DNA of 64,000 nt from Dimorphilus gyrociliatus (GCA_904063045.1 CAJFCJ010000012.1:124001-188000); one strand, 5' to 3'; shown: positions 1 to 4,228, counted from the stretch's first letter. Program-made: numbers and translations. The notes: generated by a model from the letters alone, not told the origin.

Positions 1-22
1 TATCTAAATAAAAGACAGTTAA

Positions 23-717
23 TTAATGCATAAGCTTGTTTAAAGTCTTTTTTATCCTTAAGCTGCTTAATCTCGCATCGTACTCGTGAGCCCAGCATTC
101 AATGGATATCTTTTGAAGCTTTTTACCTAGAAGCTAAATTTTTTAACTTTATAGCAAGTGATATATTTATATATACTGTATATATATATAAGTATATGTA
201 TACAATAAAACTGGAATAAACAAAAAATAAATGGTTTCTTACCATTTCTGTCTCCTCGCAATCGCTAAATACTGGTCTGCATCTATTCTGGCATACAATT
301 TGACGAATTTTGCCAATGCTCGTGTCGTGAGATATATTTTCGTAATAAGCAAGATTATACGTTTTAGAACTGTTTTTGACAAGTTCCCATCTGTGATAAA
401 TTTCCCAAAGAAACAATCCGAATGCGTAAACGTCACTCTTCTTGTAACAGTCAAAATTTGACGATTCTAGTGTACCGTCTAGAATTTCAGGTGAAAGATA
501 TCGTTTTGTTCCAGCCTATATAAGAAATATTACAATAGTATAGTATATGATCTAATAGGAAATTGCAATATATATTTTTTTTTAGAAATTTAATAGTTTC
601 ATTCTTTTGAACTGATAAGATAAGCATCTTATGATTGAAAGTAAAATTAGGTCATTATCATTTTGATTTACTTTTTAACGTATAATAAAATATCTAAATA
701 TATATATATATATACAG

Positions 718-749
<32 letters not shown>

Positions 750-2220
750 TATAGTTGGGAACTTACAATCAATTTAGGTAAATTTCCCAAATTAATCATC
801 TTTGTATCGCTATAATAAAGTACTGACACCCCAAAATCAGCTATACAGCAACGTAAATCATCTTTTATTAATACATTATTACTTTTGAAATCGCGATGAG
901 CTAAAGCAGGTTTTCTTTCTTTTCCGAAAATTTCAGTGTGTAAGTAAGCCAAGCCAGCAGCAGCTGACTGTATTATTCGAAGTAAATCTGTAGTTGATAT
1001 TTTTCTTTCTTGTAAATAATCAAAAACAGAACCATTCGAGTGATACTGAGTTATCAACCAAAACTGTGTTAGGCTATGTCTTGATGTAATATCTGAAGCT
1101 AAATAAGCAAGTATCGTTTCGTGACGTGGAAGAACCTATTATAAGTGTTTATTGCTGTAAAATGTAAACAAGTAATTTTTTCTTATATTAGGGATACCGT
1201 ATTATATATCTGACATTCTCTATTCCACGATTTTTCATTTAGGGAATAAAATATCTTAATAGCCACGTCATCTCCGTGTAAAGAACCTTTCCATACTTCT
1301 CCAAATTTTCCCCTACCGATTGTGTGTGATAATCGTATCTCATTAGCGACGGTTCTATGCATAAGGTATGGCAGACCCATTCCGCTACCGCTAGTTAGGT
1401 TTATATCACATTGTTCCTTTTGTAAAAATAAATATGAATAATAATATACTGTACACACATATATACATACATAAGAAGAACAGTATATTAACATTTAGGT
1501 TAAATGAAATGAAAGACAATAAACTCTAGTAATATTGTGAATATAATGAGGGAGGTTCAGTTATGCGTTTTTTCTTTTAAATTACACAGAAAATCCAAAA
1601 GTATGATAATGAAAGAAATTACGTGCTACAGTTATTTTCGTAATAATCTAAAGTACTCGCCTCTTCATTTATATTGGTAGAACTACATCTGAATTTATAA
1701 ATAACATAGTACGAAAAGATAGCAAGGGCGATCAATAAACCAACTATAATAGGAATTACAAAAGCCAGAACACTTGTATCAACTTTTTTAAGAGTTGAAG
1801 TGGTCTCCGCATAGCTGTATCCAAAATTCTTATTGCAGAAATTCGAATTGCAGCAGGTTATTTTAAAATAATCGGTTGGGGGGACTGTACATTGAATTTG
1901 ATTAAAACCAGCCAAACAACCTTGTTTTTCAATCGAACTTTTCGGTTCTTTAAGAATCGATGAGTAGCACTGCAATTATTGCATCACAAAAAAAAAGATA
2001 AAAAATAAACTTCACGGCTGTAAAAGTTATTTTATAAACTCTAAAATTTAAAAACATACAGTTAATCCTTCGCAAAAGGAATATTTTCCAACAGTATTTG
2101 TACATTCAGTTGCTGGTTTGCAATTACATCGAATAGATTGATTTTCAAACATTTCATTACAAGCTCTAGATCCAAAATGGGCTAGAAAAACACTTGACTC
2201 GACACAATTATTAAGAGCAT
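23..2220 (-). CDS. ACVR1: TGF-beta superfamily type I receptor Ser/Thr kinase, ALK1/2 (ACVR1/saxophone) class, about 480 aa, 6 exons
   Basis: Exons (-): 2220-2060, 1969-1661, 1416-1198, 1135-767, 515-243, 133-23. Contains an activin-receptor ectodomain (..TCCNSNFCN), a TM helix, GS box TSGSGMGLP, GRGKFGEVW, VAIKIF, HRDFKSNN, ADFG and GTKRYLSPE. The L45 region ASDITSRHSLTQFWL matches ACVR1 ASDMTSRHSSTQLWL. The model needs a GC donor at 1660 and one extra T in the tract at 2186-2190 to give signal peptide MLLIIVSSQVFFLAHFGSRA. Confidence 0.92.
698..746. repeat. (TA)n microsatellite interrupted by CAG (TACAGTA), in receptor intron 4
   Basis: Read directly: a TA run, TACAGTA at 713-719, then another TA run. 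Confidence 0.95.
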
Positions 2221-2669
2221 ACAAAACAGAGCAAGATACGGCTTATCTGATAAAAATATCAAATTGCTTGGTTTGGTCTGCGTCAAACGTAAAAAAAACC
2301 TTGTTAATTTTTTTTTCTATTTAAATACATATTAATTAACTTTATATAAAGATACTATTGTTAAATTTAATGAAATATATATTCTAGGATAGAATGTAAA
2401 CAAGATAAACTAATTAAAAGTGATAATGAAAGGATAGAGGAAAAAAGTCGGAATTTTTTTTTCCTTCCCAGAAGTGTATTGATAGAAATAAAAGTTGACA
2501 TTATTCGAATAGACTTCTTTTTCATTCTTCTTTTTACAGTTACATAAAAAAAGTTTATAAATTATATTTATTTTTCAATATAGTATCGATTGAAAATCTT
2601 ACGCATGATTATCGCACTGCATACCTATCCATAGAAAAAAATACAATACGATATAATGAATTTAATCTA

Positions 2670-4228
2670 TTACACAACAACACCATCTTCCTTGTCTTCT
2701 GTTTGTTGACAGGATACCATGTGCTTTTTAGCATTTCTTGTGTTTAAAGAATCTCCTATACTACATGTTAGGTAAGGATAACACAAACACCTAACGCCGT
2801 CTATTGTTCTCCTACCACACGGTAGGAAAAATAATTTGACAAAAGTTTGCCGAAATAATTTTGAGCAAGCGCAATATATAATAAAGTTTACAGCACTATT
2901 TACTGCTAATAGCAAATCAGTATACTCTCTTATTCCTTTTCCTAAATTATCTTCTTCTGCGTAACCAATTTCAAAAATTGTTGACATCAGAGCGTCCGGC
3001 GTAATACATATGAGAAAAACAATAATAACAGTAATCAGCATTACAGTTACTCTATTCCGTGATACTTGTTTTTTGCCTTTCACTCTTTGCTTTCTTAGTG
3101 CACTTATTATTAATGCATTTAAAACAATTAGTACAGTCAATGGTATAAGAGATCTCAGAGCATTTTGTATCCACATATATACAGTCATGAAATCTCCATT
3201 TTCACCGAGGCTTGTTAAAGCAATTTTATATCGTGTTTGATTCAATTTTTTATCAGTTTGTATCTCTTTTTTGTAGCGTAAAGCACTAGGAATGGCTAAT
3301 ATGCTCATAGTTAGAAAGACTAGAACTGAAATGATCTTTGCTCTTCTTACTGTGCACCAAATTTTCGCTTTGGTCGCCTTGATTTGGTCGTAGATGAAAT
3401 ATTATAAAATTGATTGTTTTTAATTTCATGACTAATTAGATAAGCAGTAATTGATTTCTAAAAAGGATATTATTCTTAGGTATATACTGTATATATACAA
3501 AAGTACTGTACGTATTTAAGTAAATATATACAGTATATACTGTATATACTGTATATATATATAGTAATACATATATGGTATATAAAAGTATATAACTTAG
3601 CCAAGCTTTCTATATTTATTAATTTATACGCAAAATTAGTCAGTAATTACTCAAGCCTATTAGTAAGGTTTTTCTCGTTGTCTGTAAAAGCAATTGTAGA
3701 TATCATCGCTTTCGCTTTCTGCTTGCAACTCTGAGTTCTTTGAAAAAGCTTAAGTATCAATCTACTATATGTTTTGACTTTTAACTATAAACTTTTAACT
3801 CTTCTTATATAATATTTCATCTGTACCTTGCATATAAAAATATATCTTTCAGCAGCAACTGAGACAGTTAACCATGCACAAACGCATACTGATTCATTGA
3901 AAATGTAATGAGATATTGGATATATATAGCCCATCATGGTGTTCGCTTGGGTCGGATTAGTCCTGATAAGAATAAGATTTATCCAATATAATGTATCATT
4001 AAATAATTTAATAAGATCTGCTATTGACAAGGCGGACAGAAAGGTATTGGTAGATGTAATCATATTTTTGTTGCTCAGAACAATGAGAGTTAGAATGTTT
4101 CCACTGATACCAAATATGCAAATTGTCGGAAGGAGAATGAGACCAGTTACAAATTGAGCAGTTTCATAGAAAGATTCATAGTTTGATATATTTTTTGCAG
4201 TTGTAAGCTGAGGGAAAAGAAGAATCAT
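2670..4228 (-). CDS. Rhodopsin-class peptide GPCR, FMRFamide-receptor-like, 2 coding exons
   Basis: Exon 4228(or acceptor at 4207)-3827 covers TM1-3 (GISGN, LSIAD, AERY). Exon 3377-2670 covers ATKAKIWCT and TM4-7 (CITPD, NSAVNFIIY). The 449-nt phase-0 intron joins FICK|ATKAK. A further upstream exon is possible because TTCCCTCAG at 4216-4208 looks like an acceptor. Confidence 0.88.
3481..3560. repeat. Cluster of five TAC(A/T)GTA motifs in a TA-rich intron tract, including palindrome TACAGTATATACTGTA
   Basis: Motifs at 3485, 3504, 3529, 3538 and 3547 read directly. Confidence 0.9.

Follow-up and report, generated by a model that had tools for sequence, protein, structure and literature searches.

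The ALK2 receptor of the minute marine annelid Dimorphilus gyrociliatus carries, as its normal sequence, residues known from human ALK2 bone disease. The human FOP and DIPG alleles of ACVR1 include R206H, Q207E, and G328R/W/E, and Q207D is an engineered form. Set against these alleles, E207 and R328 of Dimorphilus are exact patient residues and the arginine at 206 is lost, although position 206 is Asn rather than His, position 375 is Lys rather than Pro, and the sister species has Asn at 328. In Dimorphilus the residues are fixed wild type and stand amid about 50 other changes at near-invariant positions, and sequence comparison indicates that the disease positions changed at the background rate of a long branch.

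The gene lies on the minus strand at 23-2371 of the window, the 64,000-nucleotide stretch of D. gyrociliatus DNA analysed here, and comprises six exons (Table 1), with each splice junction present in RNA contigs. Public runs were compared with window positions 1-2600. Run X1 is unspliced DNA, and runs X2 and X3 give spliced contigs whose CT..AC joints on the plus strand correspond to GT..AG on the gene strand, so both behave as transcriptomes. Their Logan contigs show 0 differences from the genome and cover all the codons for these residues, confirming the predicted codons at the RNA level, and they likewise confirm the junction that creates a two-residue insertion in the activation segment. 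The receptor gene is expressed and correctly spliced. One X2 contig (1389-1689) retains the GC-AG intron unspliced. Reading through that intron meets a stop after ...NNCST, which would give an ectodomain and transmembrane form without the kinase; since the related species does not share the read-through frame, the contig is probably unspliced RNA.

Table 1. Features of the Dimorphilus receptor gene, listed in gene order with positions counted from the first letter of the window
Feature	Position	Strand	Content and evidence
Conserved nucleotide block	2184-2290 (2182-2290 is about 215-325 in L001, the related species)	minus	5' UTR and short ATG ORF; 97/104 (93%) identical to the relative
Short ATG ORF, 12 codons	2182-2220	minus	MLLIIVSSQVFF-stop; ends G_TTT_TTC (2191-2185), then TAG
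Exon 1	2060-2371 (5' limit at least 2371)	minus	5' UTR and first part of ectodomain, frame open from 2242, ...RACNEMFENQSIRCNCKPATECTNTVGKYSFCEGLT; X2 contig joins 2060 to 1969
Intron	1970-2059	minus	Between exons 1 and 2
Exon 2	1661-1969	minus	Remaining Cys-rich ectodomain (CCNSNFCN box), transmembrane helix, short juxtamembrane piece; RNA contigs
Intron, GC-AG	1417-1660	minus	Donor GCGAGT; RNA joint 1415/1416 to 1660/1661; GC donor also in related species
Exon 3	1198-1416	minus	GS domain and start of kinase N-lobe; Pfam TGF_beta_GS, ACVR1 alignment
Met at S194 position	1378-1380	minus	ATG (1380-1378); Phe (TTC) in related species
Asn-Glu at R206-Q207	1339-1344	minus	AAT (1344-1342) GAG (1341-1339); AAT GAA in related species
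Intron	1136-1197	minus	Between exons 3 and 4
Exon 4	767-1135	minus	L45 loop SDITSRHSLTQ, hinge, E6 loop, HRD, DFG, first half of activation segment
Arg at G328 position	914-916	minus	AGA (916-914); Asn (AAT) in related species
Intron	516-766	minus	Between exons 4 and 5
Exon 5	243-515	minus	AGTKRYLSPE and kinase C-lobe
Intron	134-242	minus	Between exons 5 and 6
Exon 6	26-133	minus	C-terminal end of kinase (LLGKKLQKISIECW...NKLMH); joint 133 to 243 in X2 and X3
TAA stop	23-25	minus	

The product of 487 codons, counted from the opening of the frame, has the domain order of human ACVR1/ALK2, human ACVRL1/ALK1, and Drosophila Saxophone: a ten-cysteine ectodomain with a CC..CN box, a single hydrophobic transmembrane helix, a GS domain, and a kinase. 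The ectodomain retains all ten cysteines and the CCNSNFCN box and gives a weak match to Pfam Activin_recp (18.7 bits against a cut-off of 20.9). The GS domain lies directly before the kinase (Pfam PF08515, 29.9 bits, cut-off 21.3), and its TSGSGMGLPYL aligns with ACVR1 without gaps. Pkinase matches cover the kinase, and alignment to ACVR1 bears out the earlier statement that its catalytic motifs are intact, with K235, E248, D336, N341, and D354 all present.

Sequence places the gene in the ALK2/Saxophone class of BMP type I receptors. A maximum-likelihood tree built from 41 named type I receptors gives 100/100 support to the branch dividing ALK1/2/Sax from ALK3/6 plus ALK4/5/7 and puts the Dimorphilus gene on the ALK1/2 side, in agreement with an earlier tree and with the class named in the original prediction. 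Exon 4 ranks ACVR1 first among PDB entries (145 bits), followed by ACVRL1 (142), BMPR1B (121), and TGFBR1 (111). The L45 loop, ASDITSRHSLTQ against human ASDMTSRHSSTQ, points the same way. A loop of the SD(M/I)TSR type determines Smad1/5 specificity, and the near identity of SDITSRHSLTQ to SDMTSRHSSTQ of human ALK2 implies that BMP-type Smads would still be phosphorylated. Overall identity to the best full-length ALK2-like representative is about 40%, and the stem branch of the dinophilid gene measures 1.59 changes per site, roughly ten times the 0.16-0.20 of the Owenia, Lingula, and Tubulanus orthologs. A search with Owenia ALK2 returned Capitella, Lamellibrachia, nemertean, brachiopod, and mollusc orthologs and no second Dimorphilus protein among its best 120 matches, from which the gene is probably the only ALK1/2 gene of D. 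gyrociliatus. A sister grouping with P0091, a sponge-like protein 74% identical to a Halisarca receptor, was rejected as an artefact: it was flagged as long branches meeting and dissolved in a better-sampled tree.

The peptides and codon coordinates originally reported for the disease positions are all correct on the minus strand. The GS region in exon 3, TSGSGMGLPYLMHRTVANEI, aligns with human ACVR1 without gaps and places Met at S194, Asn at R206, and Glu at Q207; IFGKERKP in exon 4, likewise ungapped, places Arg at G328. In phmmer searches of PDB, exon 4 aligns ungapped to human ACVR1 at 5.7e-42, and exon 3, also ungapped, finds as its top match the ACVR1 Q207E mutant entry 6eix (4.7e-23). 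The reported alteration around R375 holds in part. LPKLI/AGTKRY, which spans the exon 4/5 junction, does contain two extra residues, but R375 itself is replaced conservatively by Lys and is not lost. Arg or Lys at 375 is the conserved state in all type I receptors and belongs to the 'electrostatic lock' of the A-loop (PMC5578689). In the pairwise alignment with ACVR1, the Lys aligned to R375 is followed by the two extra residues, and its lock partner D354 is present.

These states are exceptional among conserved ALK1/2 receptors. A canonical set of 175 ALK1/2 proteins has S194 in 175/175, R or K at 206 in 175/175, Q207 in 173/175, and G328 in 174/175, and this near-invariance marks the dinophilid states as derived and rare. 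The original prediction would have lost its force had N, E, or R been common at these sites in spiralian orthologs; instead, all of the slow-evolving spiralians checked (Owenia, Capitella, Lamellibrachia, Lingula, Tubulanus, Lineus, Mactra, Mya, Patella, and Liolophura) are canonical at all four. The idea that change was targeted to activating positions fares worse. Among the 161 GS and kinase columns that are near-invariant, defined as at least 97% conserved in the 175-protein set, 50 (31%) are changed in Dimorphilus, 47 of them in both species. Change has reached 3 of the 11 FOP/DIPG positions, or 4 if the conservative F198Y is counted, which is no enrichment over that 31%. The disease-position residues thus form part of a gene-wide burst and, taken alone, do not establish that the receptor is always on.

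Non-canonical residues at 206, 207, and 328 recur in other fast-evolving receptors, as seen among 50%-identity cluster representatives spanning the GS domain and the whole kinase. The mussel Potamilus streckersoni (KAK3595991) has N-E at 206-207, the TGF-beta receptor type-1 of the sponge Halisarca dujardinii R-E with K328, Hydractinia (XP_057303824) G-E with M194, and Macrostomum lignano (PAA65577) K-E; the nematode Parelaphostrongylus (KAJ1350212) has R328 and the mite Sarcoptes (KAF7489263) K328. These long-branch carriers come from different phyla, some belong to other receptor classes, and all have intact kinases and appear functional. The tree gives no supported grouping of any of them with the dinophilid gene, which indicates that the changes arose independently. 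A common origin of N-E with Potamilus was considered and rejected, because the Potamilus protein groups weakly with another bivalve; the match is treated as convergence.

Comparison with a related species separates maintained states from labile ones. Among 1.84 billion cluster representatives, the closest protein is P0004, a fragment of 103 residues with 80% identity, and the whole ortholog of the related species was recovered from Logan assemblies SRR23372215, SRR23372228, and SRR23372229 (L001-L003) with the same exon layout, GC donor included. The relative has F194 (TTC), N206 (AAT), E207 (GAA), N328 (AAT), and the same two-residue insertion after 375; its E207 codon differs synonymously from the GAG of D. 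gyrociliatus. Over the GS domain and kinase, the two species give pN 0.10, pS 0.68, and omega of about 0.06 (Nei-Gojobori), and exon 2, encoding the end of the ectodomain and the transmembrane helix, gives omega 0.24. Both species keep an unbroken frame of 487 codons. N206 and E207 are, on this comparison, maintained by selection in the second species, while positions 194 (M/F) and 328 (R/N) differ between the two dinophilids and therefore look relaxed rather than tuned. Strong purifying selection, expression, and correct splicing together indicate that a working protein is made.

The public gene model is short by 176 residues. A profile search with the exons aligned to a full-length relative shows that NCBI protein DgyrCDS8631 (311 aa) is identical to residues 177-487 of the present model, and its end matches the exon 6 translation. 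DgyrCDS8631 takes the GS-box Met as its first residue and leaves out the ectodomain and transmembrane helix as well as most of the GS loop, all of which are backed by RNA contigs and by cross-species conservation. The annotated start, M177, was rejected as an artefact since the residue is Phe in the related species.

The 5' end of the gene has an unusual layout. The ectodomain frame is open from 2242 only, its first in-frame ATG is M31 (2152-2150), and no signal peptide in frame with the ectodomain was found: no in-frame ATG precedes M31, and in both species a signal-peptide-like ATG ORF lies one base off. Codons of this short ORF begin one base downstream of the receptor-frame codons, and a -1 slip would join the two; the predicted product of the shift, MLLIIVSSQVFFLAHFGSRA followed by C, resembles a signal peptide. 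In the related species the ATG and the T5 run are unchanged, with a TAA stop at the same place. The remainder of exon 1, beyond the conserved block, is identical between species at 83/124 positions, and synonymous sites elsewhere are saturated. Compared with the slippery heptamer X_XXY_YYZ, G_TTT_TTC is near-canonical with its first base mismatched, and the receptor frame supplies the -1 ORF. Downstream RNA structure is no more stable than that of shuffled sequences (z +1.13 and -0.01), an Rfam scan of 2000-2700 returned only a sub-threshold mir-6 match, and the RNA contigs contain no inserted base at the short ORF. A 28-nt mini-intron or a splice acceptor within the conserved block was rejected, as the RNA contigs run collinear through it and its AG sites either lack conservation or lead to a stop; a trans-spliced start codon was rejected as well, since the genome paper reports no spliced leaders (PMC7854359). 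Candidate explanations are programmed -1 frameshifting, a conserved uORF combined with an M31 start in which the transmembrane helix would serve as signal anchor, and non-AUG initiation. If true, the first would make this ordinary animal receptor gene one of the rare examples of programmed frameshifting.

A TGACGCA motif (TGACGTA in the relative) at 2275-2290 on the minus strand, bordering the conserved block on its 5' side, resembles a CRE/AP-1 half-site and could be a promoter element. Directly upstream of the receptor gene is a two-exon rhodopsin-family GPCR gene (2670-4228, minus; Pfam 7tm_1, Srw-like), whose transcript reaches about 2396, some 25 bases from the receptor transcript start at about 2371.

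What the dinophilid residues might do is best read against the ALK2-FKBP12 structure. There, R202 and R206 bond D269, Q207 bonds W227 and faces E55 of FKBP12, R258 keeps the buried GS loop in position, the E6 loop has no room for a side chain where G328 lies, and R375 blocks D336 and D354 (PMC3481300). Dimorphilus shares with human ALK2 the Leu-Pro motif of the FKBP12 site (L196-P197), R202, R258, D269, G325, G356, D354, a basic residue at 375, and all catalytic residues. Unlike human ALK2, it has M194 in place of the last GS-loop Ser, N206, E207, R328, W227L (F in the relative), Y219F, and Q201H, together with HRDFKSNN for HRDLKSKN, an insertion of two residues after K375, a very short juxtamembrane segment, and no in-frame ATG with signal peptide. 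Its E6 loop reads GKER for GTQG, and that of the relative GNEN. These comparisons suggest that a burst in the dinophilid lineage rewrote about a third of otherwise fixed GS and kinase positions, pieces of the inactive-state lock included, and that GS/FKBP12 autoinhibition may have been weakened or built differently with dependence on ligand and type II receptor kept. On balance it is likely that the gene encodes a functional Smad1/5-type receptor of this kind, with its lock weakened or rebuilt and signalling still ligand- and type II-dependent; the conserved ectodomain argues for the retained dependence, and the lack of a conventional ATG-initiated signal peptide counts against the reading. 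Signalling behaviour is here predicted from residues and structures, and loss of the lock is a real possibility.

In the stronger form suggested by the original prediction, N206, E207, and the side chain at 328 would abolish GS/FKBP12 autoinhibition and leave ligand-free or activin-type signalling. E207 and R328 do match gain-of-function alleles of human ACVR1, contacts of R206 and Q207 link the GS helix with both the N-lobe and FKBP12 (PMC3481300), the Q207 contact W227 is lost as well, and one GS-loop phospho-acceptor is missing; selection on N206 and E207 in two species and the reduced TGF-beta ligand set of dinophilids (PMC7854359) would also fit. This full unlocking nevertheless appears unlikely, because the disease positions changed no faster than the background (3-4/11 against 31%), 194 and 328 vary between the two species, and the Lys375-D354 lock, R258, R202-D269, L196-P197, and G356 are retained. 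An acidic residue at 207 and a side chain at 328 also recur in many long-branch type I receptors, and ten conserved ectodomain cysteines with an exon 2 omega of 0.24 are unexpected for a receptor that ignores ligand. An improbable alternative is that the lock is intact but made of different, compensating residues, having co-evolved with a changed type II receptor, ligand, FKBP12, or Smad. Contact pairs have changed jointly (Q207E with W227L/F, S194M/F with the E6 loop GTQG to GKER/GNEN), as has Y219F, and the otherwise conservative D. gyrociliatus genome (PMC7854359) makes the acceleration gene-specific; the co-variation, however, comes from two sequences in one lineage, and the species difference at 194 and 328 fits drift equally well.

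It is very unlikely that the gene is a decaying or non-receptor copy that lost its in-frame start and signal peptide, would not reach the membrane, and owes its odd residues to relaxed constraint. The ectodomain frame without an ATG before M31, the candidate signal-peptide ATG one base out of frame, an NCBI annotation that could only begin at the GS-box Met, and the very long branch would suit such a copy. Against it stand the omega of about 0.06 over GS domain and kinase with saturated synonymous sites, five introns that are all spliced, the 487-codon frame intact in two species, the conservation of the out-of-frame layout itself within a block 93% identical, and the Phe that exposes the annotated start as an artefact; a pseudogene was rejected on the omega and the intact splicing. 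The boldest combination, quite unlikely as a whole, is that dinophilids took apart the GS/FKBP12 lock in the one ALK2-class receptor they have, leaving the receptor constitutively primed or differently triggered as TGF-beta ligands were pruned, and that this receptor would acquire its signal peptide only through a conserved -1 frameshift at G_UUU_UUC-stop.

The gene offers a natural experiment in which E207 without R206 is the selected wild type in two species and the Smad-docking loop is kept. Tolerance of E207 and N206 bears on how the FOP and DIPG alleles act, and swaps of dinophilid and human residues could reveal which changes (W227, Y219, the E6 loop, or the A-loop insertion) make these residues tolerable, although differences at some 50 other near-invariant positions make any simple mapping of a 'natural suppressor' hard. 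An animal ALK2-like gene on an ENA metagenome scaffold (L004, P0003) has Lys-Asp at 206/207 and Asp at 328 (GAQDK) and is a further natural carrier of the 'constitutively active' Q207D-type residue.
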